A stretch of 64,000 nucleotides of DNA. It comes from Klebsormidium nitens (lineage: Eukaryota; Plantae; Klebsormidiophyceae). The translations under genes and the position numbers were made by a program. Below are positions 5,650 through 64,000 of this stretch, piece after piece; the first letter of the stretch is position 1; every line of letters begins with the position of its first letter. The stretch lies in contig DF238762.1 of the NCBI GenBank assembly GCA_000708835.1, positions 117,483 to 181,482 on the forward strand, read 5' to 3'. The notes beneath the pieces are model-generated. The model had not been told where the DNA came from. It searched no databases and saw only the letters and a list, made by a program, of their open reading frames with translations.

Positions 5650-6262
5650 GATGATTTAGTTCGCTAAAAAAAATTGACTCTTTCTATTTCAACAAATAAA
5701 CCAAGCATTCGTCCTTTTTGCTCAAAGCCTAAGTTAGTCAACTTTTTGCAAGGAATTTTATAATCAAAGTACTCACAATTGAGTACAATCAGGAACTATG
5801 AGCATCAATAGGCCCTGTCTATTTAGGTGTGCCGAACAACAACTATTTCTTTTAAAAAAGAAGTTTTTTGTTTTGCATAGTAGTGATTATAAGCCAATAT
5901 TTCATCAAACTATTCTTTTTTTTCGACTTCGAGAGAACAGATTGTTGTCGCAAAAGTGTGGCTTATTTTTTTTTCAAGCAAACATATGTTTTTTTGGATT
6001 TATAGTTCTTACGCATAGAAAAAAGAACTTCATTGATTTATTTCTTATAACGAGCAAAAAATCGTACGTTTATATAAAACCAAATTTGATATTTGGTGCT
6101 CACTTTCATGCCTATATGTTGAGTATTCGTTGTAGATCGAATTGCCTTGAACACACTTTTCAGTGGGATACGATTATCAATACTCATCCCTTGGCTAAAG
6201 AGGTAATCGATTACTTAGGTGGGGCTTTCTCTGCTTTTTAAAAGCACCGTTACTGAATATTT

Positions 6263-7141: not shown

Positions 7142-7273
7142 AACCTTAGGTCTCAAAAAAAAAGCTTCGAACCAATTGAAGGTCATAAGCCTTTTTACTA
7201 GCCTGGCAACTCAACTTTTAGAAAAAGTTGCCAGCGTTAGACGCTCACACTTTTTTTTTCATCTTTTACAAAT

Positions 7274-7597
7274 ATGAAGAAAAATATGAAGAAAGATAAA
7301 GAGTATTATATTTGGCTATATAATATAACTGAGTTCTGGGAGCTTAGGAAGATTGAAAATGATTGGACTTTAAAGTCTACCGCTAAACAGGCGCATAAAG
7401 ATTATATGATGAGTCTACTGGCAGGGAAGGACGCTACGGCAAATTGTTTTGCTACTCTCTTAGTCATTTGTACAATCGATAGAATCAATACTTTAGAATA
7501 AGCTTATAACAACTTTGTGTACTATCCCCTAAGAAATATTGCTTTTGTCATGTTTTTTATTGCCACAAACTTTAACAAAAAAACTAACTTTAAGTAA
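7274..7597 (+). pseudogene. Orphan family A copy with internal TAA (7499-7501); paralog of ORF274
   Basis: Ungapped hand alignment to ORF274 gives 28/91 identities and continues past the stop; the next stop TAA (7595-7597) overlaps the ATG of ORF180. Confidence 0.75.
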
Positions 7598-8139
7598 TGA
7601 CTAGGCAAAAAGACGTTCATCATTCTCTTTCAGAAGAAGAATTTGTTTTAAACAAGGAGTTAACTGGTGAAATTCCTTTACCAAGCTCTATAAATATAAA
7701 TGAGCAAAAGTTCAAAAATGAGAAGACTTGGTTCAGTAAGTTTATTTTTGTTTTTAAAGGATTAATCTTCAGCGGATTTTTTCTTTTACTGAGCGGAGGG
7801 TATATATTGTTTTGTTTTAGGCTGACTACTCGACAAAATTACGCCACCACATTTTATTCCAGGGTGGCCAGTCTCACTTCATCTTGTCATTTAAGTAATG
7901 CAATGCCAACGACTATTGCATTAGCTACGCCTAGTTCTGTTTCGAAGTCTGTTTCTGTTAATGCACAGACAACAATTCGCTCCGATCCTTCAAAAACTAG
8001 CTCTAGCTCTTTACATCGTAGTAAATCTTATAATATTCCAAAAAATATTCTTTCTATAGAACCACCGCCCGTTCACGCACGATATATACTTGTATTAAAA
8101 AAATGGACTCTAGTCCATCTTATTGTCGAGCAGTGCTAA
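7597..8139 (+). CDS. Orphan ORF180: hydrophobic (TM-like) segment plus Ser/Thr-rich region; possibly the N-terminal part of a fused ORF180/405
   Basis: 180-codon ORF; no recognisable family; weak similarity to ORF135 at 26533. Confidence 0.6.
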   Translation: MTRQKDVHHSLSEEEFVLNKELTGEIPLPSSININEQKFKNEKTWFSKFIFVFKGLIFSGFFLLLSGGYILFCFRLTTRQNYATTFYSRVASLTSSCHLSNAMPTTIALATPSSVSKSVSVNAQTTIRSDPSKTSSSSLHRSKSYNIPKNILSIEPPPVHARYILVLKKWTLVHLIVEQC

Positions 8140-9320
8140 AGAACGCAGATTGTGGGGCTAGGAGTAGGATTGAAATAACCAAACAAGATAAAAAAAAGAA
8201 AAAACACAGGCATTCTAAAGGTCGGAAAGGATCTTTTTGGCGTCCTCTGAAGAAAAAACTTCAAATCCGTAGAAGAAAGAGTGGTAAAAGAGCCCTAATT
8301 GGGATAACAGCTTCTACCCGAGATTATTCTCAAGAAAAAGATCTCTGCGAGGGGGAGGGCTTTAATCCAAGAATCATAGTATCTTCTCATAGTGAAATTG
8401 CCTTGATCGGGATGGCCTATTCGCTCTATTGCCAATCCTGTATGCAATTGCCGTATGCTATTCCTTTTTTGCCGCAAATTCTCCCTATCATCGTAAAAAC
8501 TGCGATTGCAAATTTTTCGACTTTACCAAACCTAGAAACTAGTGAAAGTGCACCTCAGGCTGTAGACAAGGTCGCAGAAGGCGTAGTCAAATTTTTACCC
8601 GTCATTGATTCGGGAATCAATGTTTTTGACGCTGTTCGTAAGAGAAATACTATCCCTATAGAGAAAAAAATTCAAATGGAAATTTCGTTTGTTCATAGAA
8701 AAGTTAAAGAGACTTTGCTTTCTGCTATTGATGATTCTGGTTTAATAGTAGTTGTCACAGAAGCTAAAATAAGAGATCTTCAGGGCATAAAAGAGATGGA
8801 TGGCAGCTCTCATAGGTTTAAAACCGCGGAGGAATTATGGCTTTCTGATGATATAGAAGATGCACAAATGGCTTTTTGTGATGGAAACCCTATACCTCTT
8901 TATAGTCGCATGGCGGCTACGCAGTATCTTTGTAGATGGGACGCACCGCTTATGATTTCTCCTGGTGCGCCTCAATTACGCCAGCGAATCCTTGATAACA
9001 CATTAGCTTTTCAAACTCGAATGAGAGTCCAGTTAAACAAGATTGTCATTTTCAAAAAACCAGTTTCACAATCGGAACCATTTTTTACACAATTGCATAT
9101 ATGGGCTAATTCTATGCCTTACATGCGAGAAAATCTTTATGAGACTCAAAAACACTCTTTTAAAAAAACAGATACATATTGGCAAGAAATAGAACCTCAG
9201 CTCATTGAGAGCAGCTTTCAAAAAGGTTGTGACAAGTATCAAGAGAAGTATGGAATTAAAATCTCTTCGATTGATCGACAAAACTGTATTAAGCAGTTTA
9301 TAGATAAAAAGTTTTTGTAG
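8103..9320 (+). CDS. Orphan ORF405, function unknown
   Basis: 405-codon ORF in AT-rich DNA; conserved block DGSSHRF..LW..D..ED.QM.F shared with a decayed paralog at 27421-27675; followed by a strong hairpin. Confidence 0.75.
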   Translation: MDSSPSYCRAVLKNADCGARSRIEITKQDKKKKKHRHSKGRKGSFWRPLKKKLQIRRRKSGKRALIGITASTRDYSQEKDLCEGEGFNPRIIVSSHSEIALIGMAYSLYCQSCMQLPYAIPFLPQILPIIVKTAIANFSTLPNLETSESAPQAVDKVAEGVVKFLPVIDSGINVFDAVRKRNTIPIEKKIQMEISFVHRKVKETLLSAIDDSGLIVVVTEAKIRDLQGIKEMDGSSHRFKTAEELWLSDDIEDAQMAFCDGNPIPLYSRMAATQYLCRWDAPLMISPGAPQLRQRILDNTLAFQTRMRVQLNKIVIFKKPVSQSEPFFTQLHIWANSMPYMRENLYETQKHSFKKTDTYWQEIEPQLIESSFQKGCDKYQEKYGIKISSIDRQNCIKQFIDKKFL

Positions 9321-9483: not shown

Positions 9484-10308
9484 ATGCTTCATCAAAAGCC
9501 AAAAGTATTGGTTATATGTTTGAAAACAAATGTAAAAAAAGCCTTTAAAAAAATAAAAGTTTCGACTATTGAAAAATTAAAGAGTACAGGAGCAATCGAC
9601 AAAATGGATTATGAAGATTATGAATATCATGAAGATTATCTTTGTTATTATGACATACCTAAAAAGTATTTCAATGCTAGGTATAATTTTTATTATAAAT
9701 ATCCCGATTATGAAAAGGATGATAAATTTGATATAGATCTATACACCGAACGTGAATCTTTCCGACTTGAGGGCATTAAAGATGATCCTATTTTATTACC
9801 TATTGTCCGACAGGCTTATAGAAGAGATATGATCAAGCCAGCAAGACATTTTAGGGGGACCATTCGTCACTTTCTCGCTCTTCAAGAAATTTTTTCGATT
9901 GATCGGATTAACACTGCACAAGAGTGTTATAGCAAAGGAATTATCTCAAAAATTCACAATATTCGATTTGCGAGTGAGTATTTGGCTGATACTGAGTACA
10001 GTCGCCCATTGTCTCCTAGGAAGTCGGATTACGTGAGAGAAATCATTGTAAAAAATTCATTTGTTTTTGTATTCAACAGGTTTGAAGGTAACATATTTAA
10101 AGACATTTCTAGATACGTGCAACCTTCTGATCTTTATGAGGTTGATAGAATAAATTTTGCGTTGTTAAGAATGTTTTCTTATAGCTTGTTTTTTTTGAAT
10201 AATTTAATAGATCGGTATGACGACGTTTTAGAATATTCACATTTTTTCGGAACGAAAAACCAAAAGCATTATTTCAAAAGCTCTTATCCAGGGTTTCGTA
10301 CATTATAA
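9484..10308 (+). CDS. Orphan ORF274 (family A), function unknown
   Basis: 274-codon ORF; homologous to the 7274-7597 pseudogene. Confidence 0.72.
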   Translation: MLHQKPKVLVICLKTNVKKAFKKIKVSTIEKLKSTGAIDKMDYEDYEYHEDYLCYYDIPKKYFNARYNFYYKYPDYEKDDKFDIDLYTERESFRLEGIKDDPILLPIVRQAYRRDMIKPARHFRGTIRHFLALQEIFSIDRINTAQECYSKGIISKIHNIRFASEYLADTEYSRPLSPRKSDYVREIIVKNSFVFVFNRFEGNIFKDISRYVQPSDLYEVDRINFALLRMFSYSLFFLNNLIDRYDDVLEYSHFFGTKNQKHYFKSSYPGFRTL

Positions 10309-10338: not shown

Positions 10339-11154
10339 ATGACGATCAACGTGAAAGAATTACTAAAGAATCCTGAAATTCAAGCTCGCTATATAACCTA
10401 TTCCAATAGATTAATTGATTGTCAACGAACTCTGAAACAAGATTTCAGAGACTTAGAATATTTTTTATATTCTTTTTCTGACTACAAGCATGTTTCGGAC
10501 TCAAAAAAACTTGAAGACAAAGAGATAGAATATATTTCTCAAGAAATGGATGCGGTAAAGCTACTTCTAACAACAGACTATAAAGAAAAAGATTCTACTA
10601 TAAACAAATTCAAACACTTTTTTTTTAATTCAAATCATTCTCGTTTTGCAGATGCAGGCATATTAGCTAAATATAAAAGCGAGAGATATATGTTGTTGGA
10701 AAAAGCTCTAAAAACCTACGTATTTCCAGAGCTCAAAGCTTCCCTCGCAGATAAGGTTGATGCTTTAAAACAGGATTTTACGCGAGCTCCAAATTCCCTA
10801 ACGCTCCAAGTTTATAGCCACATTTCCGAATATTTTCACGATAAGCACACTAAAATTGAGACGATTTTTTTGAATCATTTTAATTATAATTATATAAAGG
10901 GCAATAACCAAAATACAAAACTTTCAATTAGTTTGTCAATAAAAGCATCAGAAGAGGCTGTTAAATCCATAAGAACCGAAGACTTAATAGCTTACTTTAA
11001 TTCTAAAAATTTAGCTAAACCTCCATATCGTGAACGATATAAAGCTTTAACGGGGCGTGAGCCCGAAGTGTCGTTCAATCAGCATACGCTAGCTTATATA
11101 CCTGGAGCTTTTTTTAGTATTGGGGATTCTATTGATGACAGTGGGTATCTATAA
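10339..11154 (+). CDS. Orphan ORF271, function unknown
   Basis: 271-codon ORF starting 30 nt after ORF274 on the same strand; no recognisable motif. Confidence 0.65.
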   Translation: MTINVKELLKNPEIQARYITYSNRLIDCQRTLKQDFRDLEYFLYSFSDYKHVSDSKKLEDKEIEYISQEMDAVKLLLTTDYKEKDSTINKFKHFFFNSNHSRFADAGILAKYKSERYMLLEKALKTYVFPELKASLADKVDALKQDFTRAPNSLTLQVYSHISEYFHDKHTKIETIFLNHFNYNYIKGNNQNTKLSISLSIKASEEAVKSIRTEDLIAYFNSKNLAKPPYRERYKALTGREPEVSFNQHTLAYIPGAFFSIGDSIDDSGYL

Positions 11155-11387
11155 AAAACGAAAAATTATTTCAAAAAAAAAGTATGAGTCAATATTTTAA
11201 TGCAACAAAACAAAAAAGAAAATTGTTAAAAGAAAAGTTGGGCACTTAACATTTGAAATGGATATGGTTTGGTCCCGGTTGCACTGTGTGCATGTAGGCA
11301 TCATGCTCGAGATGTGCGATAATAGATGTGTGCGGTCTTGCTTCAGATGACTGCTGACTGGCAACTGTTCTAGCACCAGGCTATAGG

Positions 11388-13747: not shown

Positions 13748-15970
<2,223 letters not shown>

Positions 15971-16376: not shown

Positions 16377-17250
16377 TCCATGACAGTCGATTATCCTCTC
16401 CTATCCTAAGTGATAGGATGAGGTTTTTTTACGAGAAAAGTTTTTCACTCTTTGAAAGAATTGGATTGACAATTGCCTATCGATAAAACAATACATCGAG
16501 ATATGGACGACGTAGAATTAGAGTTAGGCGTCAGCTTTCCTCGATTTCAGATTACCCAAGAGCTATGCAGTCGTTACGAAGTTGACTATTTGCGGGCTGC
16601 TTTTTATCAAGGGACTTCTTAACTTCTTCATACGAATCTTTTTACTATTTTGTTTTTACTTCTATGGGATCCAAAGTTCTTGATTTCTTCTGGTTTTCCT
16701 ATCTTTCAGGGTCTTATTTTTTTGCAAGATTTTCGTTTTTCAAACTTATCATACTCAACTGCTGAGCCACTGTTTACAAAGCAGCTGATGTTTGGCTATA
16801 TATTGACTCGGATTCGTAATCAAATAAAACAAATAAAGCTTTTCCGTTGGCTTGGGATGAGTTTTGGAAGCCAAAAACGTATCATTTTTGTTTATATGTT
16901 TAAGTGAATGGCGGAAGTTGCATCAGGATGCAACGGGCTGAACCTTCTATAAGTTTGAAAAGATTTTTTGAAAGAATTCTAAGCTTGATTCAGCCCAATT
17001 CAATGCGTTTTCTTCTTTCGAGCTTTTTCAACTTATAAAAGTACGATAAAGCAAAAGAATAAACTGCTCTTGGTTTGATGATGTTTGATATTTATTAAAG
17101 ATCAGAGACCCTTCCGTAATGCAAATGAGGATTAGGCTTATCAGTTTGCCAAATCGCGAAGAATCCCTGCAATTTGAAATACTTCGTTTGAAAATTGAGT
17201 TTTTAGATTTTTTATATCGAATATATATGTTTTGTGGAAAAAAGCTTAGG

Positions 17251-22529: not shown

Positions 22530-23258
22530 TTTTGATCCTATTATACTATTATACAACGTAAATCAATAAATGAGTCCCATTGCTATCAAACTCATTGATT
22601 TGATGTTATTCTTTTATTACCTTGCTTGTATAATCAAAAGCTAAAGAAAGGAGGATTGAATGACTTGGGCTTTTCCTCATATGAAGCCGCCTGTTTCGTA
22701 TGTACGTTCTATTCAAGAGCAGAAATGAAGGCCTATTCACGATCCATTTCTTCAACAACAAAACTTTCAATACACTCAATCTCTATCCTCGGATTATAAA
22801 ACTACTGTAAAATGTAAAAAATTCTCTTTTTTTTGAACCCCCGAATAAAAACAAAGAATCTCGTTTCAATTTTGACCACTGGAAACCACCGGAAAACAAT
22901 GTTCAAGCACGCGAATAAGAGGAGCAAGGAAAAGAAACTATCCGCGCTGTTGTAGCTGGGGTAGTAAACAAGTATTTTCAAATCCAAATCCCAGGCAAAA
23001 AACAAATGAATAATCTTGAATTACAATCTTTAGAAATATTAGCAAATAGGCAAAAAATTTTTAACTTAGATTTTTTACGTTGTGAAAAAAGAACAAAAAT
23101 GCGATTGATAAAATAAATACACAATCGTTAAAAAACATTAAGAAATTGAGGTGAATGTTTGGGGAACTGTTTGACTTTTCTTACTTGTGTACAGCATTCT
23201 TCTCTTATTTTCTCTTAATACACCTAAAAAAATGGCTCCATATGAAGAGGGAAGCAAC

Positions 23259-25728: not shown

Positions 25729-26446
25729 GGGGGTATAGCTCAGTTGGTAGAGCGCTGCCCTTGCAATGGTGCCGTACGAATGACTCCTTTATAGGAGTCT
25801 TAGCTTTTCTACGCGGATTCAGCCAAATGAAAAAGTGAGCTTCATACCCAACGCCTTACCTCCCTTCCAAGTAGACGGGATGGGGACTATCACATGGCGT
25901 GTATCTGTTTCCAGCAAAGCCCCTTGTTAAAAAGAATTTGATGAAGCAGGTGGAAGAATGATGGGAGGTCAAGAATATTCTGTGTGAGTCGCAGGTTCAA
26001 AGGTGTTAGTAAGGCCAGGCAGGCCTTTCCAGAATGGAAATTATGGATGGGGGGTGGGCGGCCCCACACCTGTGCAAGCGGGGCGGTATACCCATTCCCT
26101 GAGTAAGCATCTAGGCTCGTCACGGAGGCTTGTTCCCCCACCTTGCTCCGCGTAGCAAAGGACAACGGGATTGCCTAAAGGGGCTATTTTTGCCCTACGG
26201 TTTCAGAGGGGCCACCTCAAAGAGAACGCGTGCGGCACCAAGCTGTGCGTATCCTTGGGAGAAGGCCTTGAGGTTGGTATAGGGTAGACTGTCGTTTGCT
26301 CAATGCTTTCCAAAGAGCTCACCATGGCACGAGCTGTCCGGTGTGTTCGGGGGGGAACGTATGTATTATTCTGGCTGTTAAGGCAGATAAACTATGCACA
26401 CGTTTCCTCATGGCAGATGTCAGCGGTTCGAGCCCGCTTACCTCCA
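25729..26446 (+). tRNA. trnA: tRNA-Ala(UGC), exons 25729-25766 and 26412-26446, group II intron 25767-26411
   Basis: GGGGGTATAGCTCAG...CCCTTGCAA|intron|GGCAGATGTCAGCGGTTCGAGCCCGCTTACCTCCA; G3:U70 Ala identity pair present. Confidence 0.96.
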
Positions 26447-26532
26447 TACCTTTTGTGTTTTTTTCTTCTCTCTCCCTCTCTTTTGGGAGGGAGGGGTTTC
26501 TTTTTTGCTTTTTTGTATGAGAAGTATATTTT

Positions 26533-27880
26533 ATGAAAGGTGAAAATAAAAACTGTCTTGATCTAAAAACAAATCAATCTAAGAGATTAGAATCAGGAAA
26601 AAGCTTTGTAAGACTCGATCCGTCTATTCAAGACAGCCCAAATGTCTCTTCTTTTCAAGAGGAGACAAAGAATTCTTTTTCTTCATTTTTGTTGATTTCG
26701 TTGGAGATAGGCCTGAGAGGTTTCGTAGTCTCGGTACTTTCTATTTTGTTGTTTAAGCTACAGCAGGTGTGTGCAACACCTTTGCCACTTGTAGCTGGGA
26801 CGACTGCTCAATTGAATCTTACACAAACCCCCGAGACCTCGATTGTTCCACTAACAGTAGATGCTTCCATTCCACTATCGCACTCTATTTTTCTAAATAG
26901 AATATGTTTGGCAACATTGGCTCGGCCCACCATGTTTTGAAGTCTGTTTGTTGATGATCGTCGACGTTCATGGTTCGATTGGTCTATCCATAGAAACCTA
27001 CCATCCAATAGCAAAAACACTCGTAATAAAATAATAAAAGAGGGGTTATAGCATCTTTGGGAGACGACAATGCGGCGAATAGCTTGTTTGATATGAATGA
27101 GCAATTGAATGTGATAACTTGGTCTGAGAATAGACAAAAATGAGTCATTATTACCACTTTGTTGGTAATTATTAGTTATTAATCGCAATTTCCCGTCCGG
27201 TATAGAATATGTTGCCACGCCTATTCAAAATTTTTAGTAAGAATTTACCGGCTTTAAAAGAACCCGCATTCACTATAGAAAGTGGAGTGAATATTTTGAA
27301 AGTAGCAGTAGAGGCGATAGAAAAACGCTCTAATATACAAACAAAAGGAAAAATGATAATTCCTTTCGATGTGCAAAAACAAGCAGACTAAGTGCTCCCA
27401 GATATAAAAAGAATGAGAGTTTGCGATCAACTGTTCAAAAGGGAAAATTTCGAAACATAGTCAACGGAGAATTCAATTTTGACGGCAGCTCGCATCGGTT
27501 TATGGCGCTTCAAGGTCTATGGACTCTAGATCTTTTTGAAGACTTCCAAATGATTTTCGGTACGTATATTTCTCAACCTTTCATTGATTACGAAGAGTTC
27601 CTTTCTTTATGGTCTACAGACATCGCAATCGCTCTTGGTAAAAAACTAGACGAAACGATCCAGAAGCAGACTTAGAGGGAATAATTGAAGAGTTGATCGA
27701 TGAGGGGTGAGTATGCAAATTGTGGGGTTTTCCTTGATAACACTTGACTTTGCTTCAAAATCAATTGTGCGAGCTGTGCGTTGCGCTGGTGGTGGAACGT
27801 CCCTTTGCTTGACAACTTGAGAAGGGGCCTTTATATTATGCAAGTAGAAAGAACACGCTCTTTCGACTCGCATATGCAAG
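26533..27880 (+). pseudogene. Fragmented paralog of ORF180/ORF405 in the trnA-23S spacer (3' limit approximate)
   Basis: Pieces TPIQNF / IESGVNI..EAIEKRSNI / DGSSHRFMALQGLWTLDLFEDFQMIF match ORF405 in collinear order, interrupted by stops and frameshifts. Confidence 0.82.
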
Positions 27881-27945
27881 TTTTTTGAGCGATTCTTTCT
27901 CTATGGCATACGATTTGTTTTAGCGTGGCCTTCGGGCGATGAAGG

Positions 27946-29025
27946 TTCAAGGGAAGAGGGGCTTACGGTGGATACCTAGGCATTCAGAGGCGAAGAAGGG
28001 CGTCGTGGCCGACGAAATGCTCCGGGGAGCTGGGATTGTGTGAGGATCCGGAGATTCCCGAATGGGGTAACCCCAATGTACTCGTGGGCTTTTGGCTTGC
28101 GAGGGGCAACCTGGCGAACTGAAACATCTTAGTAGCCAGAGGAAGAGAAAGCAAACGCGATTCCCCCAGTAGCGGCGAGCGAAGAGGGAACAGCCTAAAC
28201 CGGTTGATCCGGGGTTGTGGGAGGGCAGTTAGGGTGTTTCTTCGCTAGACGAAGCGGTTGAGTTCCGCACCGCAGATGGTGAGAGTCCAGTAGTCAAAAG
28301 CGTCGTTTCGCCCTTGTCCCAACCCGAGTAGCATGGGGCACGTGAAATCCCGTGTGAATCTGCGAGGACCACCTCGTAAGGCTAAATACTCCTGGATGAC
28401 CGATAGCGAACTAGTACCGTGAGGGAAGGGTGAAAAGAACCCTGGAGAGGGAGTGAAAAAGACCATGAAACCGTAAGCTTACAAGCGGTGGGAGGGGGCT
28501 TGAACCCCTGACCGCGTGCCTGTTGAAGAATGAGCCGGCGACTCATAGGCGGTGGCACGGCTAAGGCGATGCACGCCGAAACCGTAGCGAAAGCAAGTCT
28601 GACAAGGGCCCATGTCATCGTTTATGGACCCGAACCCGAGTGATCTAACCATGGCCAGGGTGAAGCTTTGGTGAGACTGAGTGGAGGCCCGTACCGACCG
28701 ATGTTGAAAGATCGGCGGATGAGCTGTGGTTAGGGGTGAAATGCCAATCGAACTCGGAGCTAGCTGGTTCTCCCCGAAATGCGTTGAGGCGCAGCGGTGT
28801 TCGAGGGTGGGCCAGGGGTAAAGCACTGTTTCGGTGCGGGCTGCGAGAGCGGTACCAAATCGAGGCAAACTCTGAATACTGGCCCTGCTTGCCGAACACC
28901 AGTGAGACGAAGGGGGATAAGCTTCTTTGTCGAGAGGGGAACAGCCCAGACCATCGGCTAAGGCCCCCAAATGGCCGCTAAGTGGCAAAGGATGTGGGAG
29001 TGCTCAGACAGCCAGGAGGTTTGCC

Positions 29026-29066
<41 letters not shown>

Positions 29067-30844
29067 ATCAAGCGCTCCCGCGCCAAAGATGAACGGGACT
29101 CAAGCGGCCTGCCGAGGCCATGGGATGTAAAAAGCATCGGTAGGGGAGCGTTCCGCGGCAGGTTGAAGCGTAAGCGAGAGCAGGCGTGGACGAGGCGGAA
29201 GTGAGAATGTCGGCTTGAGTAACGCAAACACTGGTGAGAATCCAGTGCCCCGAAAACCCAAGGGTTCCCCTGGAAGGCTCGTCCACGGGGGGTGAGTCAG
29301 GGCCTAAGGTGAGGCCGAAGGGCGCAGCCGATGGACAACAGGCATACATTCCTGTACCTCTCCGGGCTGGGGACGAGGGACGGAGCAGGCTCGGTTGGCC
29401 GAGGGATGGTATCTCGGTTGAAGGGCTCAAGGCGCGATGGGGGCAGTGATCCTGGCCCTAGCTAAGGCCCGAGTTAGTAAAGCGTCAAGGCGCTGAAGAA
29501 ACCTATGCCATGCTTCCAAGAAAAGCTCGTACCTCTTCAGGCTCGGAGGGCCTGTACCCGAGACCGACACAGGTGGGTGGGTAGAGAATACCTAGGGGCG
29601 CGAGGCAACCCTCTCTAAGGAACTCGGCAAAATAGCCTCGTAACTTCGGGAGAAGAGGTGCTCCCCTCTTTGGGGGGAGCCGCAGGGACCAGGCCCAAGC
29701 GACTGTTTACCAAAAACACAGGTCTCCGCCAAGTTGAAAAACGATGTAAGGGGGCTGACGCCTGCCCAGTGCTGGAAGGTTAAGGAAGTTGGTGGCCCCC
29801 TCCTTGAGAGGGGGGAAGCTGGCAACCGAAGCCCCAGTCAACGGCGGTCGTAACTATAACGATCCTAAGGTAGCGAAATTCATTGTCAGGTAAGTTCTGA
29901 CCCGCACGAAAGGCGTAACGATTTGGGCGCTGTCTCGGAGAGGGGCTCGGTGAAATAGACATGCCTGTGAAGATGCGGGCTACCTCCACTGGGACAGAAA
30001 GACCCTATGAAGCTTTACTGTTCCCTGGCATTGGGTCTCGGCCCTCCCTGCGCAGCCTAGGTGGGAGGCACAGAAGCTCTTCTTCCGGGAAGGGCCAAGC
30101 CATCCGTGAGAGACCACCCTGGAAGGGCTAAGATCCTAAACCGATGCCCTATGATAGGCGTTGGAACCGTGCCAGGCAGACAGTTTCTCTGGGGCAGAGG
30201 CCTCCCAAAGAGTAATGGAGGCGTGCAAAGGTTCCCTCAGGCTGGACGGGAATCAGTTGTAGAGTGTAAAGGCAGAAGGGAGCTTGACTGCAAGACCAAC
30301 AAGTCGAGCAGGGACGAAAGTCGGCCTTAGTGATCCGACGGTGCCGCGTGGAAGGGCCGTCGCTTATCGGATAAAAGTTACTCTAGGGATAACAGGCTGA
30401 TCTTCCCCAAGAGTCCACATCGACGGGAAGGTTTGGCACCTCGATGTCGGCTTAACACATCCTGGGGCGGTAGCACGTCCCAAGGGTTGGGCTGTTCGCC
30501 CATCAAAGTGTTACATGAGCTGGGTTCAGAACGTCGTGAGACAGTTTGGTCCATATCTAGTGGAGGCGTGAGAGCATTGAGGGGCCATCTCCCTAGTACG
30601 AGAGGACCGGGAGGCACGCACCGCTGGTGTGCCAGTTCTCGTGCCAACGGGACACGCTGGGTAGCCATGTGCGGAACGGATCACTGCTGAAAGCATCTAA
30701 GTAGGAAGCCTACCCCAAGATGAGTGCTCGTTATTAGGCCCCGGTCAGAACAACCGGACTCCAATCATAGGAGAACAGAGCTGCCATGTGGAAGTGCAGC
30801 GATGCATGCAGCAGAGGCAGGCTAACAGGCCGATACACTTGAAC
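27946..30844 (+). rRNA. rrl: 23S ribosomal RNA including a contiguous 4.5S-like 3' segment (about 30735-30844); ends approximate
   Basis: TTCAAG...GCTTACGGTGGATACCTAGG start; CTAGTACGAGAGGACCGG sarcin-ricin loop; GTGGAAGTGCAGCGATGCATGCAGC...CTTGAAC end. Confidence 0.98.
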
Positions 30845-30973
30845 CAACATTCGCCCCAAGCTCAAGCTACAAGCACGTGGTTTGCTTGAAACCTCTCTCA
30901 AAAAAAGAAAACGAATTGAGAGAGATTCAAAAGCAAGCCCCGTTTCGGAGCGTCGGTGAATGCCGACGCAAGT

Positions 30974-31095
30974 CATTTTGGTGCCCTAGGCACAGTGGAA
31001 CCACACTCATCCTATCCCGAACTGAGTTGTGAAACACTGCAGCGGTCAAAATACTATGGGGGATGCCCCATGGGAAGATAGCTAGGTGCCAAAAT
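30974..31095 (+). rRNA. rrf: 5S ribosomal RNA
   Basis: ATTTTGGTGCCCTAGG...GGAACCACAC...ATCCCGAAC...GTGAAAC...GATAGCTAGGTGCCAAAAT with complementary ends. Confidence 0.95.
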
Positions 31096-42984: not shown

Positions 42985-45900
42985 CTACTTATTCTTCCTA
43001 TTAGGCTTGTTGTAAGATCGAGACACAAGGAGGCGCCACAAGCTCTTGGGAACAAGTGGATAGGCCTTGTTTCGAGCCCATAGCTTGAACCCTTCGGGTT
43101 GCTTTTCGAATTCAGAGCGGATCGACTTCACAAGAAGTATACGCAACTCGGTTCGACCCAGTTGGGGGATGCCTGCCTTACGACCAAGCATCTCTACCCT
43201 CCATATGCGATCGGACCAACGAAGCATCCAGTCAAACCCTAGGTCTCGCAGGGCGCGTCTTAGCGGCTTGAGCCTCTCTCTCCATGTTTGTTGGTAGGGC
43301 TTCTCAGGGAAGTAATAGCGAGTTCTCCACCAGATTGATGATGCACGCCAAGTGCGCAAGGAATACATAGCTTTCTGGATAAAGTGTTCGGGAAGCCCAT
43401 GGAAGGAGTAGCTCATCTCATGGGCCATAGGTCTCGCAAGGGTACCCATAGACGTCATGTAAAGATCCTTCGTACGAATCTCCATTGTACGGGCGACGGA
43501 TGGGCCATCCTCGTATCCCTTTAGCTTGGACACTTGAAGGTCCATCCACTGGGAGAAGAAAGGCTGGAGGGGTACGGGCTCAGGAAGCCTATTTCCTACG
43601 TGACGCACCTTACGCTCGTACTTCCTTTTCGTCACTGGCTCTTCTTGTTCTATCTGCCCCAAACCCGACGACACACTGTTTTTCAATAGAAGATTCGAGT
43701 CATTATGACTCTTGCGGGAGCTTAGCATATGATGGAGCAACGCTTTACTTGCAAAGAGCCGATCCTGTTTGTTCCTGTCGGCTCCGTAAGAGGCTGATTC
43801 GTGGTTGGGGGAAGGCAAGTTTTTCGCTGGCAGGCGTCCGGCTAGCGGTTTTCCTTGACCGTTGCTCTGCAAGGACTGGACTGTCAATTTCCAGGTAGGC
43901 TGGACTTGGGCCCAGGTTTGGAACGGGTGAGTTCGGTGCTGGGATCCATCTTGAGCATTGGAGTGAGTCAGTTGGAGTAGCTTTGCGGGCAGATAAGACA
44001 AGGTGTTGATTTGAGTCTTAAGCCACCGGGATGTACGATTCGCCCATGCAGTTAGTTGAAAGATCCACTGATAGATTTGTTGAGATAGCTCGTGAGGGGA
44101 AAGCAAGACGGGTCTTGGCAGCCTGTTTTCTTCATTGGTACCTGGGAGCCTGTTCTCTGGGCGGATAGGCTGGCCAAACGCCCCGATGGCCTGGCATTGC
44201 CAAAGAGCAATTCCCTGTCGGGCCTCTCTGCCTAGGTGCCTGGTACCTTGCTGTCTAAGATTATTCTCTGCTATTGCATGCTTGGGGGAAGGAGGGCTAT
44301 ATACGAACTTCCTTTGTACTACTCCCATAGCCCAGCCTAGAGTTCGTACCTTCATTCGTGGGAGAGGTTGTACAAGGTTTCTTGTTCGTACCTGATTCGC
44401 TTCGTCGTGCCGTCGATTATCAAGCTGTGCAGTTCGTATTTTCCACATTTCCGGATTTTCTATCTCTCTGGCGAGAGGACACTGCAAGCTTGGTGGGAGA
44501 CCCTGGGGTTGTACAGGGCCCATGAAGAGAACGGGATCCAGGGGAGTATGAATGTCAAGCATAACTGACTTGCCAAGAGCCTTACCCATCAGCGCTCTCC
44601 AGGCTCGTATGTCCTGAACAGTGTGCCAATGGAGAAATTCCATGTGCACGCTTTCTTCATTCTTTTTCCATGCTATACTTTCTTCGGGTTGGTTTTTACC
44701 CCAAGCCCAGACGTCCTCTGAGCGCTCTCCGCGTCGTTGATAGACCACCACGTTCCCCTTAAGGTTAAACCGCACTCTGTTTCCAACAACAAAGCTGCCA
44801 AATAAGCTACTATCCCACGGCTCAACCCCATAGTAGTTATAATCGTCAACCCCATCGTAGTAGTAATCAATTCCAAAGTCAACAGAGTCCTCAAAGCCGG
44901 GCCTGTAGACCACGAGATCGCTTTGCGCGGGGCTGGTTCGAGAGGTAGATACCTTTTTTACGTAAGCCAAGGCATCCACTAGGCTCACCATCCTTGGATT
45001 CTTATCCATCTCGTTTATAACTTCTAATTTATTGTTCATTGGCATCTGCTGCTTGAGTTTCTCAAGCCTAGTACTGCTCTCAGAATCCAGAAGATCAGGT
45101 GTCGCCCTTTTCTCCAGAGAGAGCCGATCTCGCAAGTGTTTGTTATAGCTAAGGCTCTCAATCTCTTTGCTCAGTGTACGGAGCTGCCATTCGACCTCAA
45201 GGGGAATTTCCACCTTAGGTAAGGAACGAACTGCAAGCCCCCAGGGAGCATGCAGGCGACGAGTATCTCGCGTAGCGTGTAGGCTTGAAGAGGGTACGAG
45301 GATGCGCATGCTCTTTGTGGCCTCCTGTTGCAAAATGTGAGCAAGCTGACGAGAGGGCAGGCTTAAATCATATAGCGCAACCATTAATTTTGCCATGTCT
45401 TCTCTCACCCAAGATCCGCTGGTCTCTACTTGGCATGCTTTTCTTTCGTTCACATCCATGAAAAGACGAAGTAAGTCCAAGGCCTCTTCCAGGCCAGATC
45501 TAGACTTTCGAAGACCTGTCACTGCCCTCTCAATCACCTCAGGCACCTCCAGCAATGTTCTCTCCAACGCTTTTTGAGATTCACGATAAGCTTGCAGCAT
45601 CTCTTTCCGATGGCGCGCATAAAGACGAAGCCGACGATTGATATTATCCTCCATACTTGAGGAAAGCATAGACTTGGTTGTTGCACTGAGACAAACCAGG
45701 GCGGCCTCCCTTAGTCGAACAGGCATGGACCGCAAGTTCCTCTCTCGAAGTTTGGGGTCCCTACGGCTCCATAGTCTCTTGCCCTCTGCCAAGTTCATAG
45801 GCTCTTTCAGCCCCCTAGGATTTTTAAGGGCTTGCTCTATATTATCAATATCAAGTGCTAGGCCTTGAAACAAAACAATGAGTCTTTGTCGTTGGAACTC

Positions 45901-48900
45901 GCTAAGGTGTAAAGCCGCGCTACAGGTGCCATGTACGAGACGTTCAATTTCGGCCGTACGCCATGAGAAGGCTTTATCGCGAATTGTGCTCTTTTGCTTG
46001 AGGATCAAAGCTTCTCTCTCTCTTTGGGGGAGGCTCTTGTTGAACTGAAATAGTTGACCCTTGGAATGGTCTGTTAGGTTTAAATCACTCCGTCGTAGAG
46101 CGAAAGATTCCCATTTTATGGCCCACTCTTCCAGGCTCATGCTATCCTTTTCCCAAACTTCTTGAGGATTGAGCACGGCCGATTTAGCAAGGCAGGCTGT
46201 AGCTCTTTCTAGGCACCGTTTACAGCTTTTCAAGCAGTTTCTCTCTACCCTCGTCACTTCGCGCCGGCTTAGTTGATTGTCCACAGCTTGTGCCAAGTTG
46301 CCAGCAAGAGACATTGTTCGCTCAACCTTTTTGCGCTCTATAGCGTATAGCTTTGTATCAAATGCTTGGCTCTCGGGAGAATCTTGGTGCAAAAGCCTTG
46401 AACCTTCCAACACAGCCATTGCAATTGTGCTTTCTATGTTCCGTAGGCTTGTTAGGTAGGACATAGCTTGCACTTGGCGAACAAGGCTGTGGCTCACCGA
46501 GCCAGAGGGAAGAGCTTCTTCTGCCCAGGACAGTGTGACCCCAGTAATTCCCAAACTACTCTGATGGCAAATCGAACTCCTATTCGGTCTTTGTCCAATC
46601 CGATCGAAGATCAAGCCATAGCTGGGTTGCCTCCAAAATAGACGAACCTCGTCCCATAGCTTTGCTTGCCTCCACGGAGATAACATGTTCCAGCCTTCTT
46701 CTCGCCAATGAAGGACAAAGAAACGGGCCACATGGGCTAAAGAGTTCCAGCTGTCTTGAATCGGAAGGGACAAGGTATGGGCTTTATCTTTAAGACTTCC
46801 AAGTGTTTCCATCATTTTCGGCTTCCCGCGCTTGAGGCTAAGCGTCTCAAGATGTATTTGATTCCTCCATGCCTTGCCTGGTTCATGCCGGATCAAGCCC
46901 GCGAAAACCTCTCTTCTTGCTCGTTCTTGGCTCAGTGCAAACTTCCTTGTTTCACGCTCTCGTTGTTTTAGGGCTTTAAGACGGCTCATAACACCTTCTG
47001 TGTAGCTCTGGTTGGGAATCAAACCTTGACCCAGCTTGCTCAGAAGTGGAAGAGGTACCTGTAGACTGTAAGAGGAATGCTGCCATAGACGTTCCACCCA
47101 TAGGTGTAGCTTATGGCCTAGAGCTCTGCGACGGATCTTGTTCATTCTGCGTAGCATTCTTTGTCTGGAGGAGTCAGGCGCTAGCCTCTTCCAAAGAGCA
47201 AGGCTGCGTCGTATTAGACCGCTTGAAAATAGACCGTTCTGGTCTTTTTTCTCATATTCGAAGCCCTCCGGATCATACAGCTCCTCATAGCTGTTCAAGC
47301 TCTCTTTGTCCGAAAGCTCTGGTTGGGGCTCTTGAGGCTGAGGCTCTAGCTGGTGCTCTTGAGTCTGAGGCTCTGGCTGATGCTCTTGAGGCTGAAGCTC
47401 TGGTGAGAACTGCTCCTTCGAATGAACCTCGTCAATGTGCTGGGTTGTTTGGCCATCTAAGATATCAACCTTTTTCCGAAGAGGTTTCATCAACACGTCT
47501 GAGTCATAGAGTTCACCCCGGAAAGCAAAGTCTTTAATACTTGTATAGTGTGGCAGTCCCTTAGCTCGCCGCTTACCCGTCTTATTGGCTAGTGTGCTCA
47601 TGCGTTGAAAGCGTGTGGGGTTGTTCAACTGCAATATCCGCCAGTTTCGGTTTGTTAGCACTTGTATAGGATAAACGTATTGATTTTGGGCCTTAGAGGA
47701 ACCAGCTTTTACAACCCAGTCGTAATTTTGTAGGTCCATTCCTAGCCACCATGGCTTAACGCCCGGAACCTGTCCATAAGTCTTTAGAAAAAACGAGGGT
47801 ACTCGCTTATTAATATAGGGAAGATCATGATATGGGACTCTAGTAAAGCCAAAAAAGCTCCACAACTTCTTCGTTACAGCCTTGCGTCTACGGATAAACC
47901 GATTGTAGTATTTGCGGAGCCCCTCAGAACTGTTGTCTGGTGGGTACACCCGTTTGTATAGCTTGCGATAGTAGTTAAGGTTGTCGTAGTCATTTCGGGG
48001 AAGAAGAAAGCTCTTCACCTCTATCTCGTTCAGTGCTTTCCAGGGGTTATGCACAAAGGCTTGGAGAGCCAGCTGGAGAGCCTGGAAAGGGTTCTTGATG
48101 CGCACGGCTATCATGTGGTCGCTAAAATGGCTCGACCTGTTTCTTGTTCCAACAAAGGAGGGAATCTTCTTCCACTTGCCTTCACTGACCTTGCGCTCGT
48201 ACCGGTTCCAAGAAAAAAAGCCCTTATTAGACGGTTGATAGATGAGCTGTGGCTTGCCCAAGATCATGAAGGTCAGGTACACCTTACTGTCCGAGGTAGG
48301 AAGGAGTGGGATGAAGGACCGAAACATACCCTGAACCACGCCGAGATTGAATTGAATCACCCGACTGGCAATCTCTACAAACTTTCCTAGCCATACCCCT
48401 CCAATCATATGAGAATACCTATCCACAAGAACAAGTATTCCATCCTTACTACGTAAATCGTATTCCAACCTTTTAGTAAATCGGGCCATGCTTTCCATGT
48501 CCATAGCAAGACTTATACCCCTCCGGAACAGATCCCAGTCCGGGTGTTTTTGAAAGGTCTCATAGGATGGACTTAAACCAAAGAACACTTGTTCGCTGTC
48601 ATTGTTCGTCGGAACATACTTCTTTAAGTTCACGTGGTCCAAATTCTCAAAATCGCTGTCTAAAACTTTGCCAATACGCTTACGCTTACGCTTGAAGTAT
48701 TGAGTGTTCCGATAGAGGGGCTCCAAGATGGTAGGGTAAGACTTGTATTGGCGTAAAGAAGATGGGCTTACCCCCCGACCTAAGCTGCTCTCTGGCTTCA
48801 CAAGACGTGGGATTCCAAGGAATCCTCGACTGATTTGATAGGACCGTCGAGGCAATAAGCCTGGCTTGAGACGACGTATTGTCTCCATAGACATAGATTC

Positions 48901-51900
48901 TCGACCGAACATATCATCCCATAGCTGGCGCCAAGGCGAGCGGTGCTCATATGTGGGTAAAAACTCTTTGATTTTCGCCAACCGACGCATCTCGGCGTAC
49001 CAGAAAGACTCCTCTTCTATCTTGGTACGTGTATTGGGCCGATCGGCATTGGGTCCTACTAGCCCCAGAGATGGGCGTAGGTATGGCAAGAAGGGTTGGT
49101 GGCCCTGGCTCCACTCGATATGCCTCCTAACGCCCACCAGATAGCCTGAAAGTCCTAGTCGGCGCACAGGCATCTCAGGCTTCCAGCTTTGAATCGCTGG
49201 GAGCTCTTCCACGTGTTTTAGGCCTTGGGACGTTTGGATTCTCTTAGCTTGTAAGCACTTTTGTCCCAAATACATCTGCTTAGTAACCTGAGAACGCCTG
49301 GAATGGCTCTCTAAGTGAGCTTGTCGGGCCCGCAATTCTCTTAACCTGTCTCTTTGGTTGGTAAAAATAGGCTTGACAAGTAAAGGATCAGTAAGAGCCT
49401 TATCCATTGACTGAGCGAGTGGCTCGGACGAAGATCGCACCATTGCCGCTAGTAAGCCAGGCTCTTTCAAAGGTTTTAAGCCCCCCGCGGGAGGCAGCCC
49501 CTCTCCGGCACTCGTACCCCAGAACGTGAGTGACTCTGCGGCGTCTAGAAGATCTGTGATCGAAGCCACTTCGCCTATCTTATCGTTCAACCCAAGCTCG
49601 GTCTCGCTGCTGTCAGTTTTATGTACTGGCAGCATAGGGTCCTCAAAAAAAATCTCATCGCTTTTATTCAACAGATTGCTACTCATACCATGGAATCGCC
49701 AGAAATCTGCCCAAGCCCAGGCTTTCTCAAATAGAGTGGGTCGCCTCATACGCTGGGGATTTGACGACTTCAACCAACTGGATTGAAGATGCAGAGAAGC
49801 CAGTCGAATGGCAAGGCGCAGACGACGCATTATTCTTTTCATCAGATATAGGTCTCGGATTGCCACTTGGTCAAGGGCTGAAGTATGAAGCCTATCTGTG
49901 CCGCTTTGCTCGTCGGCTCTTTCCGCTTCGTACTCGAGTATGGCTTCTAGGTCAACAGGGGAGCCGGAGCGGGTTGCCCATCTTGCGGCATCACCACGCT
50001 CCCAAGCACGTCGCATTATGTCTTTTCGGACTCCCTCCTGCGTATCATCTGTTTCAATACGAGAGCGAAGCTCCCCAAGAGCCCAGCGGCTCAGGCGTGG
50101 CAGGTGTTGTTTTTCCATTTCTGCTACAACCTCTGGTTCAGGCATGTTGAAGCGAACTTCTTTGGGTTCAGCATCATCTATATGAGGATCCATTGCCATA
50201 CGTCCAAGAACTCTTTCTTCGGGAAGTCCCGAATGCCCTAGATAGAATCGTGCAATGGGTCCAATCGGATAGTGATACTTCTTTTTGGATATCAATCCTC
50301 TCCACCTATCTGCCTCATTGACTTTACCTACGCGTCGGCTTATACGCCTATGCCAAGCCTGCCGCAGACTCTTATCTTTTAGAGAAGGAATGACCCTTTG
50401 CTTACGATTTTCGACTTCTTCAATTCGTTCTTTTTGCTCATCTAAATAAGCTTTACGCTCTCCCGCTGGAAGGGAGCTCTGAGCAAACCATTCCTCCGCT
50501 ATAATACGAGCACGGGAAGGATTGCGCGTTTCCTCATACGAGTTATGATGAAATATCTTGCGAAAAGGAAGTGAGCTGGCCTGGTCATACTCATCCACTC
50601 TCTCTTCTTTATTTCGCCAATTGTCACGTCCGATTAAATGATCCTCCCCATGATCGATATCGCCCCACCAATCTTCTTGCCACCACAACGAGTAAAAGCA
50701 TTCATAGAGGTCGTCCAAAGAAAGGAAAAGTGACTCTGGCTTGAACAAGAAAGACGGGGAGCTTATCGTCTCACTCTTATCCATTGGCAATTCATACCCC
50801 ATTTCCTCGCTTTTTTCGGAAACCTTTCCCTCTTTTTGTCTGTCTCTTGAGCGGGCCGGTTGTTTTTCATCCCCCTTGTCTTTTCTTTTCACAATTGTGA
50901 GAGCATCTTTTTCATAGGGTTGTATGCCTGTATCGAATAGGCCAAATATCATCTGTGATCTTTCTATCTCTTCTCCAAAGCTGAAAGCCGGAGGAAACAA
51001 TTCCAAAGCTTGCCCTTGCCTGTGACTCGCGGATAACCCTAGGTTAGCAAGTTCAGATTGAGGAATGTACTTTTGGGCTGTAGAATCCCATGTCCTATAC
51101 CTGTGGGTTCGTCCTCTCATTGTTTTTAAGCTTTCGAGGGAGTGCCTTTGCTTGTTTCCCCTGGCCAACATCCTTCCTAGGGCTAAACGATATCTAGCTC
51201 CCCATGCCCGTCTCCGCAGAGAAGGGTCCACACGCGAATCGTCTAGGCGTACCAACGCCAGGACCCTCTCGTCGTCTGCAAAGAGAGAAAGAGGGTTCAG
51301 TCCTGCTAAGCTTGCCAGTGCTTTTCGTCCTTCTTGCTCATAAAGACGTAGGCTTGTAAGTCTCAGGCTATGAGTAAGCATAAGACGTAAGTTATTCTCA
51401 CGGTTCTGCCTAGTAATCATTGCTTGTTCCGTCAAAGGCAGGGTGTATTGTGTTCTCTGATAGCGTTGCATCTTCTTACTAGCCAGCTTGGCTAGCTCGT
51501 AGCGCTGGGTTCGTAATTTCTTGCCAAGCAACGGAGGCAGAGGATTGTACAGTAAAGACCGTTTGTCCCATTGAGAACGATGCAAGGCCAAAAGCATCCG
51601 ACGGCCCCGTTCTGTCACACCCGATGTACCCTGTCGCCATAGGTTCGCCCACCTGTCCTCTAAGGGCCCAACCCATTCTAAAGCACTCACAATACCGATC
51701 TCATTGGACGCCCGCCAAGGTGCTGTTTTCTCTTTCTGAATGGCCTCACCTAGACCAGACCAAGAGTGGGTTTTGCTTGGCTCCCCTAGCAAAGTATGTC
51801 TTAACGGGGGCAGCTGGATCTGAGCTCTTCTATGATGCCATGAATCAAAGATTGGCATAGGAAGGGGGCTTAAGGAGGGGGTAGGTCCAACCCAAGTGCC

Positions 51901-61898: not shown

Positions 61899-62174
61899 AT
61901 GGAAAACAGTGACTGGTATGAAAATACTGATTGGTTTGAGGATAATGATTGGCTTTTAGGTGGAACTTTAGTAATGGATCTAACATTTAAATGTGTTTAT
62001 ATTATGGGCTCTCGTGACTCTATGATGATGAAAAACAAGCATGAAGAAATAGAAATCCCATTTTCTCTTTTAAATGTAGAACCTGAAGGGATGCCCAAGG
62101 AAATGCTTGGGCATTTAATTGCAAAAAAAGTTAAGCTGAGATTTTATCTTATGGCTTGCTATATGAAAACGTAA
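61899..62174 (+). CDS. Orphan ORF91 (family E), paralog of ORF167
   Basis: 29/71 identities with ORF167 by hand alignment (WL.GGTLV..L...CV.I.GS ... RFYL..CY). Confidence 0.7.
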   Translation: MENSDWYENTDWFEDNDWLLGGTLVMDLTFKCVYIMGSRDSMMMKNKHEEIEIPFSLLNVEPEGMPKEMLGHLIAKKVKLRFYLMACYMKT

Positions 62175-63496: not shown

Positions 63497-64000
63497 TTAA
63501 AACTCTTCTGATTTTATTATATTTTTAATCTGTTCTAAATGAACAGAAATAGCGGCTGCTTTTTTTTTTAAGCTTTTTACTTTCTTTTTTACCCATTTCT
63601 CAGAAATAAGTAAAAAAGGGACTAAATTGCTTCGATTTTTTTCTTCATTTTCGTAAATACAAATTTCCTCGTAACATGACGTGAGGTAAAAGCGGGATAT
63701 TAATTTGAGCTCTACCGTGTTCCAAAGCTCTTCAGTAGTTAATCCTGTTGGATTTATACCTAATAAATCAAGTGGTAATATAATCTCGGAATTGTTTCTT
63801 CGACGCAAACCGTGTGACCCATAAATTATTACACAATTCTCGTGCAAGTTTAAAACTAATGTTCCACCGCGGAGCCACGTTTTCTCCGTTTTCCACTTGT
63901 GAGTCTTAAGCCAAACGAAGGGAATAAAGGCCTCGCTTGGCCATCGAAGCCCCACCCAAGACATACTTTCGTTATCAATCTTACTATCTTTCGGGTCCAT
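63497..64000 (-). CDS. Orphan ORF167 (family E), possibly 5'-partial at the window edge
   Basis: Paralog of ORF91; its ATG coincides with the last base of the window. Confidence 0.7.
   Translation of the reverse strand: MDPKDSKIDNESMSWVGLRWPSEAFIPFVWLKTHKWKTEKTWLRGGTLVLNLHENCVIIYGSHGLRRRNNSEIILPLDLLGINPTGLTTEELWNTVELKLISRFYLTSCYEEICIYENEEKNRSNLVPFLLISEKWVKKKVKSLKKKAAAISVHLEQIKNIIKSEEF

Follow-up and report, generated by a model that had tools for sequence, protein, structure and literature searches.

MORFFOs (Mobile ORFs in Fern Organelles) are clustered orphan plastid ORFs that occupy variable intergenic sites, including sites in the inverted repeat (IR) near the rrn genes (PMC13000998). 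They show purifying selection together with frequent pseudogenes, a divergence well above that of canonical genes, and a presence that varies among close relatives (PMC13000998). The plastid of Klebsormidium flaccidum contains unidentified ORFs of 6,063, 1,785, and 1,425 bp (PMC4007539), and unidentified Klebsormidium ORFs also appear in earlier plastome papers, where no relationship among them is drawn (PMC4007539, PMC4877394). Zygnematophycean plastomes carry phage-derived int and primase ORFs, some of them in the IR (PMC4877394).

The DNA analyzed here, referred to as the window, is a stretch of 64,000 nucleotides from the plastome of Klebsormidium nitens. Its gene set comprises psbD-psbC-cemA-petA, psaA/B, a split psbA with a maturase, odpB, ycf4, rrn, ndh, chlL/N, tufA, and ccsA. 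It also contains members of two orphan gene families, A and B; related loci from other assemblies are cited by their L numbers. Like the MORFFOs, family A occurs at several sites (the psbJ side, the ndhJ side, rps14-psbA, and trnA-23S) with a content that varies among close strains, and its intact pairs show a dN/dS of ∼0.5 with several copies broken. Same-site A genes of the window and L001 reach a dS of 0.43, to which paralogy may contribute, compared to a difference of 0.052 at the third positions of psbC; these copies have therefore been replaced or are fast evolving. In contrast to the MORFFOs, A and B have so far been found in Klebsormidiaceae plastomes only and not in fern organelles, and the named relatives of A or B include no fern- or land-plant-named match, most of the 39 profile matches to A carrying no name. 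No mitochondrial or nuclear contig with a copy was seen. A and B are co-oriented with their flanking genes, whereas MORFFOs are often opposite to theirs (PMC13000998), and the A/B arrays are apparently tied to IR junctions and contain captured copies of a 23S promoter. The A/B system behaves like the MORFFOs but is not classed as one, as its host range is another and no homology was found.

Like A and B, the K. flaccidum ORFs are orphans from long intergenic stretches in this genus, and the 1,785-bp ORF matches in size, and in size only, a 596- to 607-aa ORF beside the arrays (PMC4007539). For these ORFs and the GenBank entries of K. nitens hypothetical proteins, no link to an rrn spacer or an IR junction is reported, and neither they nor family A are described as a family in the literature searched. 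The zygnematophycean int and primase ORFs are, like A and B, free-standing noncanonical ORFs in streptophyte algal plastomes, but they have recognizable integrase or D5-primase domains, which A and B lack (PMC4877394).

A dead family-A gene in the trnA-23S spacer

The spacer between trnA-UGC and the 23S rRNA gene holds a real but dead paralog of the new orphan plastid gene family A. The spacer and its flanks contain the following features.

26411 to 26447, + strand: 3' exon of trnA-UGC, with a group II intron upstream; assigned by sequence, with the same letters in L016 and L026.
26465 to 26506, + strand: hairpin (26465 to 26496) and U-tract after trnA, a terminator-like or processing signal; native, predating the insert.
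26533 to 26940, + strand: ORF135, the 5' part of the dead family-A gene; ends in a premature stop at an end common to L026.
26941 to 27414, + strand: middle of the pseudogene with several stops and 1- to 8-nt indels; three-way alignments with L016, L010, and L026.
27415 to 27675, + strand: remnant of the helical A domain (first half), with DGSSHRF at 27481; profile and tblastn.
27676 to 27710, + strand: candidate remnant of the last helix of family A, read in a different frame (EELIDEG-stop) behind an internal deletion; by eye against family C termini.
27734 to 27944, + strand: native 23S upstream block with a sigma-70-like promoter; conservation and consensus match.
27945 to 30846, + strand: 23S rRNA gene; Rfam.

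With trnA-UGC ending at 26447 and 23S starting at 27945, the spacer is ∼1.5 kb long and has a GC content of 38.7%, compared to 52% and 57% in its flanks, which bears out the long, AT-rich spacer of the first-pass annotation. The usual length of 100 to 200 nt that served there as a yardstick does not apply, as the default in this genus is long: spacers without the insert in more distant assemblies measure 695 and 919 nt and show no trace of family A. In L036 to L038, NdhI is identical to an Interfilum protein, and L041 matches K. crenulatum identically; the trnA intron of L036 to L038 and L041 shows ∼77 to 81% identity. The spacer sequence was found, whole or in part, in 20 runs from 14 studies, which together with independent assemblies rules out an assembly artifact. 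L016 carries the spacer with the insert at 97.6% identity, and the L026 spacer is 80.5% identical to that of the window over its whole length. The L010/L011 version is only 681 nt long, two deletions having removed most of the gene and retained the hairpin and the promoter. Contigs from two soil metatranscriptomes contain 32 to 41% of the sequence words of the spacer, with strand and level not readable from contigs.

Alignments of the window, L016, L010, and L026 spacers show one gene, running from the ATG at 26533 to ∼27710 and broken by stops and small indels. The tBLASTn search of ORF405, a family-A reading frame after psbJ, against the window had been suggested as a check and gives a significant match at 27319 to 27672 (31% identity; E = 2e-5). 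The stop-free piece from 27334 to 27672 also matches a profile made from relatives of ORF405 with the spacer left out (E = 1.5e-8). Short peptide matches had been read as a decayed copy of ORF180/ORF405. One of them, IESGVNI..EAIEKRSNI, starts at 27275 within the pseudogene middle and is indeed collinear, in the frame common to the relatives. The TPIQNF match is due to chance and lies off this frame; L016 and L026 carry 8 extra nucleotides at ∼27209, the 8-nt deletion is peculiar to the strain of the window, and the ancestral frame at the site reads ILLPRL.., fitting the "LP" helix of the family. Chance also produced the FLDNT match, which falls into the native noncoding block upstream of 23S, where L010 reads FPDKA and L026 reads FPHKA.

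ORF135 consists of a hydrophilic N terminus, one predicted transmembrane (TM) helix near residue 53, and a Ser/Pro-rich linker. The resemblance to ORF180 that had been claimed for it is an architecture in common, namely, the TM helix, and not a significant similarity: tblastn shows no match at an E value of ≤1, the pairwise shuffle p value is ∼0.03, and the comparison with the N-terminal profile gave 7 of ∼490 shuffles. ORF135 is assigned to the family-A gene because of its position and frame. As a live gene it was rejected; its L026 counterpart is frameshifted, and its dN/dS between the window and L026 of ∼0.8 (P = 0.29) is neutral.

The window and L026 have three stops in common, after ORF135, near 27143, and at 27673, and the spacer gene therefore died before these two lineages split. 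The stop that ends the remnant at 27415 to 27675 is common to L010, L016, and L026, and this remnant shows a dN/dS of ∼0.97 against L026. For the spacer copy as a whole, dN/dS is 0.92 (P = 0.38) with the observed substitution types allowed for, similar to the values of its two off-frames; a value of 0.64 disappears once transition bias is allowed for. As intact A pairs are constrained and the spacer copy behaves like its off-frames, constraint, past or present, applies to the family but not to the spacer copy. The spacer copy is a neutral pseudogene, vertically inherited from a single ancient insertion.

In a midpoint-rooted tree built from short rows, the spacer copies from other strains fall into a separate clade with long branches (100/100), nested in a group with the ORF405-like and 627-aa subfamilies. 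This separate subfamily contradicts a recent duplication of ORF405. The spacer gene is a broken member of family A, as supposed, but an old paralog of its own subfamily rather than a copy of ORF405. Homing endonuclease genes and intron ORFs occur in plastid rrn operons. The spacer gene resembles them as coding DNA within the rDNA cluster, but it is not intronic, shows no LAGLIDADG, GIY-YIG, HNH, or reverse transcriptase (RT) match, and belongs to a family with a helical predicted fold. Rfam finds no intron RNA in the spacer, and no mobility enzyme was found for the insert. Terminal inverted repeats and target site duplications are absent from the L026 spacer, where they were searched, and an insertion of this age could have lost such marks.

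Candidate transcription signals around the insert

A hairpin similar to that after trnA is present in six of six spacers folded or scanned, including the insert-free spacers of L036 and L041 (the scan misses L041), and is followed by a U-tract in L036. On the 23S side, the candidate promoter of the window, TTGACA-17-TATATT, lies at 27809 to 27837; single consensus matches of this kind are near chance. The insert-free spacers of L036 and L041 keep the 23S upstream block, with TTGACA-18-TATCTT or TATGCT. As insert-free relatives and L010 keep the hairpin and the promoter, the insert sits between two older signals. Conservation and consensus matches indicate that 23S probably has its own promoter in the Klebsormidiaceae and that the insert probably landed between two transcription units. 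A 27-bp stem (L026:16895-16948, with an equivalent block in all spacers) separates the promoter from the 5' end of 23S and may serve a separate 23S transcript as leader or processing structure.

The promoter block, in the form of the insert-bearing lineage, recurs in eight copies among the array genes of L001 to L004, L008, and L023 (E ≤ 5e-24), most of them with good -35 and -10 elements. The L023 copies carry two 23S 5'-end fragments, and the block therefore moved from the rrn locus into the arrays. Duplicated 23S promoter/5'-end pieces at L023:13590-13812 and 14488-14680 flank a family-B ORF in the array. The psbJ array of the window itself has no promoter block, and the DNA pattern of the block has no match in viral or metagenome contigs.

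Further features were observed in the rrn region. Rfam places a 5S rRNA gene at 30977 to 31094 of the window (70.6 bits); rrn5 is reported as absent from the K. flaccidum plastome (PMC4007539). The trnF-16S interval (∼22530 to 23150) contains a broken remnant of orphan ORFs of 362 and 103 aa, which are open in L016:14309-15767 and a remnant in L026/L027 and show no match to the family-A profile.

Family A, family B, and their arrays

The live arrays and further copies of the two families in the window, all on the + strand, are listed below.

7241 to 7564, + strand: broken family-A fragment after psbJ; tblastn with ORF274 (E = 5e-7) and profile (E = 6e-12).
7597 to 9320, + strand: ORF180 and ORF405, a single family-A gene interrupted by a -1 shift in an A-run near 8096 to 8103; homolog comparison.
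9484 to 10308, + strand: ORF274, family-A domain without the TM region; tblastn, profile, and tree.
10339 to 11154, + strand: ORF271, family B, the orphan partner closing the arrays; profile and family search.
16470 to 16904, + strand: family-A relic of older date, between rps14 and exon 1 of psbA; profile (E = 2e-4).

ORF180 and ORF405 had been taken as separate genes. They are one frameshifted gene and are counted as such, as the homolog P0004, which occupies this locus in L008, runs unbroken over 548 aa and the A-run of the window near 8100 is short by one base. The shift is either genuine or due to a homopolymer error in the assembly, the latter being conceivable at an A-run because 454 reads were used. 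Together with the spacer copy, the window contains five family-A copies. The relic between rps14 and psbA has an equivalent in L010 (profile E = 3e-7), and the region is present in L025 and L026 too. In L026, the rps14-psbA interval has an extra insertion (L026:3786-5494), in which a decayed gene of family B (E = 1.5e-7) is accompanied by an ORF with a TM segment and by copied psbJ-flanking DNA.

An exhaustive profile search, likewise suggested beforehand, yielded 39 family-A matches among 1.84 billion representatives, of which one or two weak tail matches look spurious (P0164 is a repeat protein). The named matches are hypothetical proteins of K. nitens, three of them deposited in GenBank as "hypothetical protein [Klebsormidium nitens]," and those that could be placed are all on Klebsormidiaceae plastome contigs. 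Intact A proteins comprise 500 to 640 aa. Most full-length members have one predicted TM helix at residues 40 to 75, followed by a Ser/Pro-rich linker, a basic linker, and an all-alpha domain of ∼245 aa, for which the AlphaFold model is wholly helical (pLDDT, 86.6; pTM, 0.80). Fold searches with this domain (PDB, BFVD, Atlas, and VIA) found generic four-helix bundles at most (best Z, 7.6), and A shows no significant match in Pfam, PHROGs, PADLOC, NCBIfam, or PDB sequences. Coexisting subfamilies are deeply diverged, with 17 to 30% identity. Across 18 diverse members, I, A, R, and L residues are invariant and D, W, L, and Q residues are near-invariant, the near-invariant D sitting thirteen residues upstream of the invariant R. 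The motif DGSSHRF-x5-LW, put forward as the signature of the family, does not hold: within DGSSHRF only R is invariant, and D is found in 5 and H in 4 of the 18 members. A structure prediction had been suggested as a check for an active site of D, H, R, and E residues; the predicted fold is an all-helical bundle, and the D, H, and E residues of the motif vary. This pattern of conservation is more in keeping with a structural core than with an active site.

The original proposal of an amplifying family of orphan genes with an unrecognized domain is supported, the intact members being under purifying selection. With substitution types allowed for, intact A pairs show dN/dS values of 0.49 to 0.60 (P ≤ 0.03 in five of six pairs), comparable to the 0.46 of the intron maturase; a value of ∼0.5 is weak, and past selection could give the same. 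GC and GC3 are within the host range. Family A is probably an orphan plastid family restricted to the Klebsormidiaceae, with a previously unrecognized domain, that evolves by birth and death.

Family B is unrelated to A (hhalign probability, 0.1%), and fold searches with its model (pLDDT, 63) found generic helical bundles in VIA (best Z, 9.6) and BFVD. Co-oriented A arrays lie after psbJ in the window, L001, L008, L010, L016, L023, and L025 and after ndhK-J in L002 and L003. Six of the seven arrays seen to their end show the order A(n)-then-B, the exception being L010, which has A but no B gene in the psbJ-psaA interval. The spacer copy has no accompanying B. Between the window and L016, B shows no constraint (dN/dS ∼1.3). 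Array content differs among the close strains compared (the window, L001, L010, L016, and L023), and in L003, which comes from the L016 sample, an ORF180/405-like gene with 84% DNA identity lies on the ndhJ side. Many array copies are broken, some of them on low-coverage long-read contigs that break petA and psaA too, and therefore not every break in an array gene is real. An orphan ORF of 596 to 607 aa, rich in K, I, L, and F, lies antisense beside the arrays (L002:8005-9795, L003:4804-6174, and L023:11372-13195, all on the - strand); its copies are 76 to 80% identical, on the ndhJ side in L002/L003 and on the psbJ side in L023.

The contigs of L023 and L004 stop upstream of psaA (window position ∼11,210 to 11,330), as expected at the start of a repeat. 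The IR of K. flaccidum is 51,118 bp long, with ccsA alone in its small single-copy region (SSC) (PMC4007539), and an IR from ∼11,210 to 11,330 to ∼62 kb of the window would, at ∼51 kb, match this size (PMC4007539). Judged from the contig ends, the two array sites are apparently the two junctions between the large single-copy region (LSC) and the IR. The spacer copy would lie inside the IR and thus be present twice per genome. One contig holds both L037, with an insert-free spacer, and the A-B-B array of L025; this suggests that the arrays are older than the spacer insertion, although the 310-kb contig could be chimeric.

Other orphan ORFs occur near these sites and elsewhere. Two ORFs of 91 and at least 167 aa at 61899 to 62174 (+) and 63497 to 64000 (-) of the window flank ccsA in opposite orientation. 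They are 37% identical over 83 aa, show no Pfam match, and may represent a third orphan family at the IR/SSC borders. An ORF of 147 aa at 5798 to 6241, between petA and psbE, is open in L001 (83% identical), L023, L024, and L025; hypothetical ORFs in psbJ-petA are mentioned for Zygnematophyceae (PMC4877394). The ndhD-chlL interval of K. crenulatum-like plastomes contains an orphan ORF of 300 aa (L041:15202-16104 and L042:8812-9945) that belongs to neither A nor B. At 42985 to 55479, the window has an ORF of 4,164 aa (∼4,166 aa in L036 and L037) with ∼50% GC that is ycf1-like by position and N terminus.

Origin of the copies and significance

The account that best explains the observations as a whole, considered probable though well short of certain, combines an A/B birth-death family, junction arrays, an old neutral spacer copy, and spread through host recombination. 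One old A copy entered the trnA-23S spacer, broke before the window/L026 split, and has drifted neutrally since. The insert would have been tolerated between the trnA terminator or processing hairpin and a separate 23S promoter, with the rRNA supply independent of it. The array sites would be both LSC/IR junctions, and copies would spread through the recombination and repair of the host (shifts of the IR border, gene conversion, and microhomology joins) without an enzyme of their own. The strong promoter block of 23S would have reached the arrays by the same traffic and probably serves there to drive the gene that follows. The intact A product may be a dispensable, nonenzymatic, membrane-anchored binding or scaffold protein with B as a partner, and the most likely role of A and B would be the persistence of the cassette itself.

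The coexistence of deeply diverged subfamilies, same-position copies several-fold more diverged than host genes, and the lack of a cellular homolog would also suit A and B as cargo of an unsequenced extrachromosomal element (plastid plasmid or virus) that integrates repeatedly at recombination-prone sites, an origin proposed for the fern MORFFOs, with the spacer copy as an old integration; the high divergence of same-position copies is equally expected from an outside reservoir. Such an origin is unlikely, as A has no match in phages, plasmids, viral contigs, prokaryotic genomes, or JGI metagenomes, where the contig scans with ORF405-subfamily words reach close relatives only. Furthermore, the surroundings of the arrays revealed no gene for replication or integration, GC and GC3 are host-like, and all placed contigs are the chromosomal plastome or a short piece of it. 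Hardly credible is the first-pass reading, in which an autonomous insertion element is aimed at the co-transcribed rrn spacer and encodes an enzyme with a DGSSHRF active site. The location within the rrn cluster, the copies at several loci, and the invariant R with its near-invariant upstream D agree with it, but it is largely refuted by the variable D, H, and E of the motif, the all-helical predicted fold with no nuclease, integrase, or RT match, and the lack of terminal repeats in the L026 spacer. What had been seen as a niche of selfish elements holds a neutral pseudogene, vertically inherited from one ancient insertion, between a hairpin and a 23S promoter that are both older.

A toxin-antidote (addiction or drive) cassette, in which membrane-anchored A harms plastids or cells without B, agrees with the A(n)-then-B order recurring at both sites across wide divergence, the predicted TM anchor and helical bundle, the fast turnover, and the frequent decay. 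The feature neighbors of A in Atlas include Cry-toxin N-domain-like families, but their scores of 0.80 to 0.82 are at chance level; the Cry endotoxin N-domain has no Pfam match and is absent from the best 50 fold matches. With no pore-forming or toxin fold among the generic bundles matched, no significant PADLOC, Pfam, or NCBIfam match, an A without B in the psbJ-psaA interval of L010, and an unconstrained B between the window and L016, this cassette is very unlikely. A broader version is quite unlikely: A-B would be a plastid-resident selfish addiction or drive cassette of two domains without known fold and without a mobility enzyme, riding IR-border recombination and repeatedly capturing the promoter of a 23S transcribed apart from 16S, with the spacer copy as the fossil that unites gene and promoter. 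It is highly improbable that A and B serve the host as plastid membrane proteins specific to the lineage and shaped by diversifying or dosage selection, with the broken copies as ordinary duplicates. Purifying selection on intact copies, the confident predicted fold, and the presence of A in five of five assemblies seen at the psbJ site speak for a host function; however, there is no stable one-to-one ortholog, close strains hold different subfamilies at the same site, and the sole TM-bearing copy at psbJ is frameshifted in this assembly.

Plastomes are usually regarded as closed gene sets, with the fern MORFFOs as the main known exception. A and B represent an independent, apparently nonhomologous MORFFO-like case in streptophyte algae, with a well-predicted domain matching nothing searched and with a second, linked family. 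The spacer copy is dead, and its value is that of a marker of family history. Spread through IR junctions with promoter capture would be a plastid-internal route, in contrast to the idea that MORFFOs replicate outside the plastome. The hairpin and the 23S promoter conserved across the Klebsormidiaceae suggest that the rrn operon is transcriptionally split despite its intact gene order.
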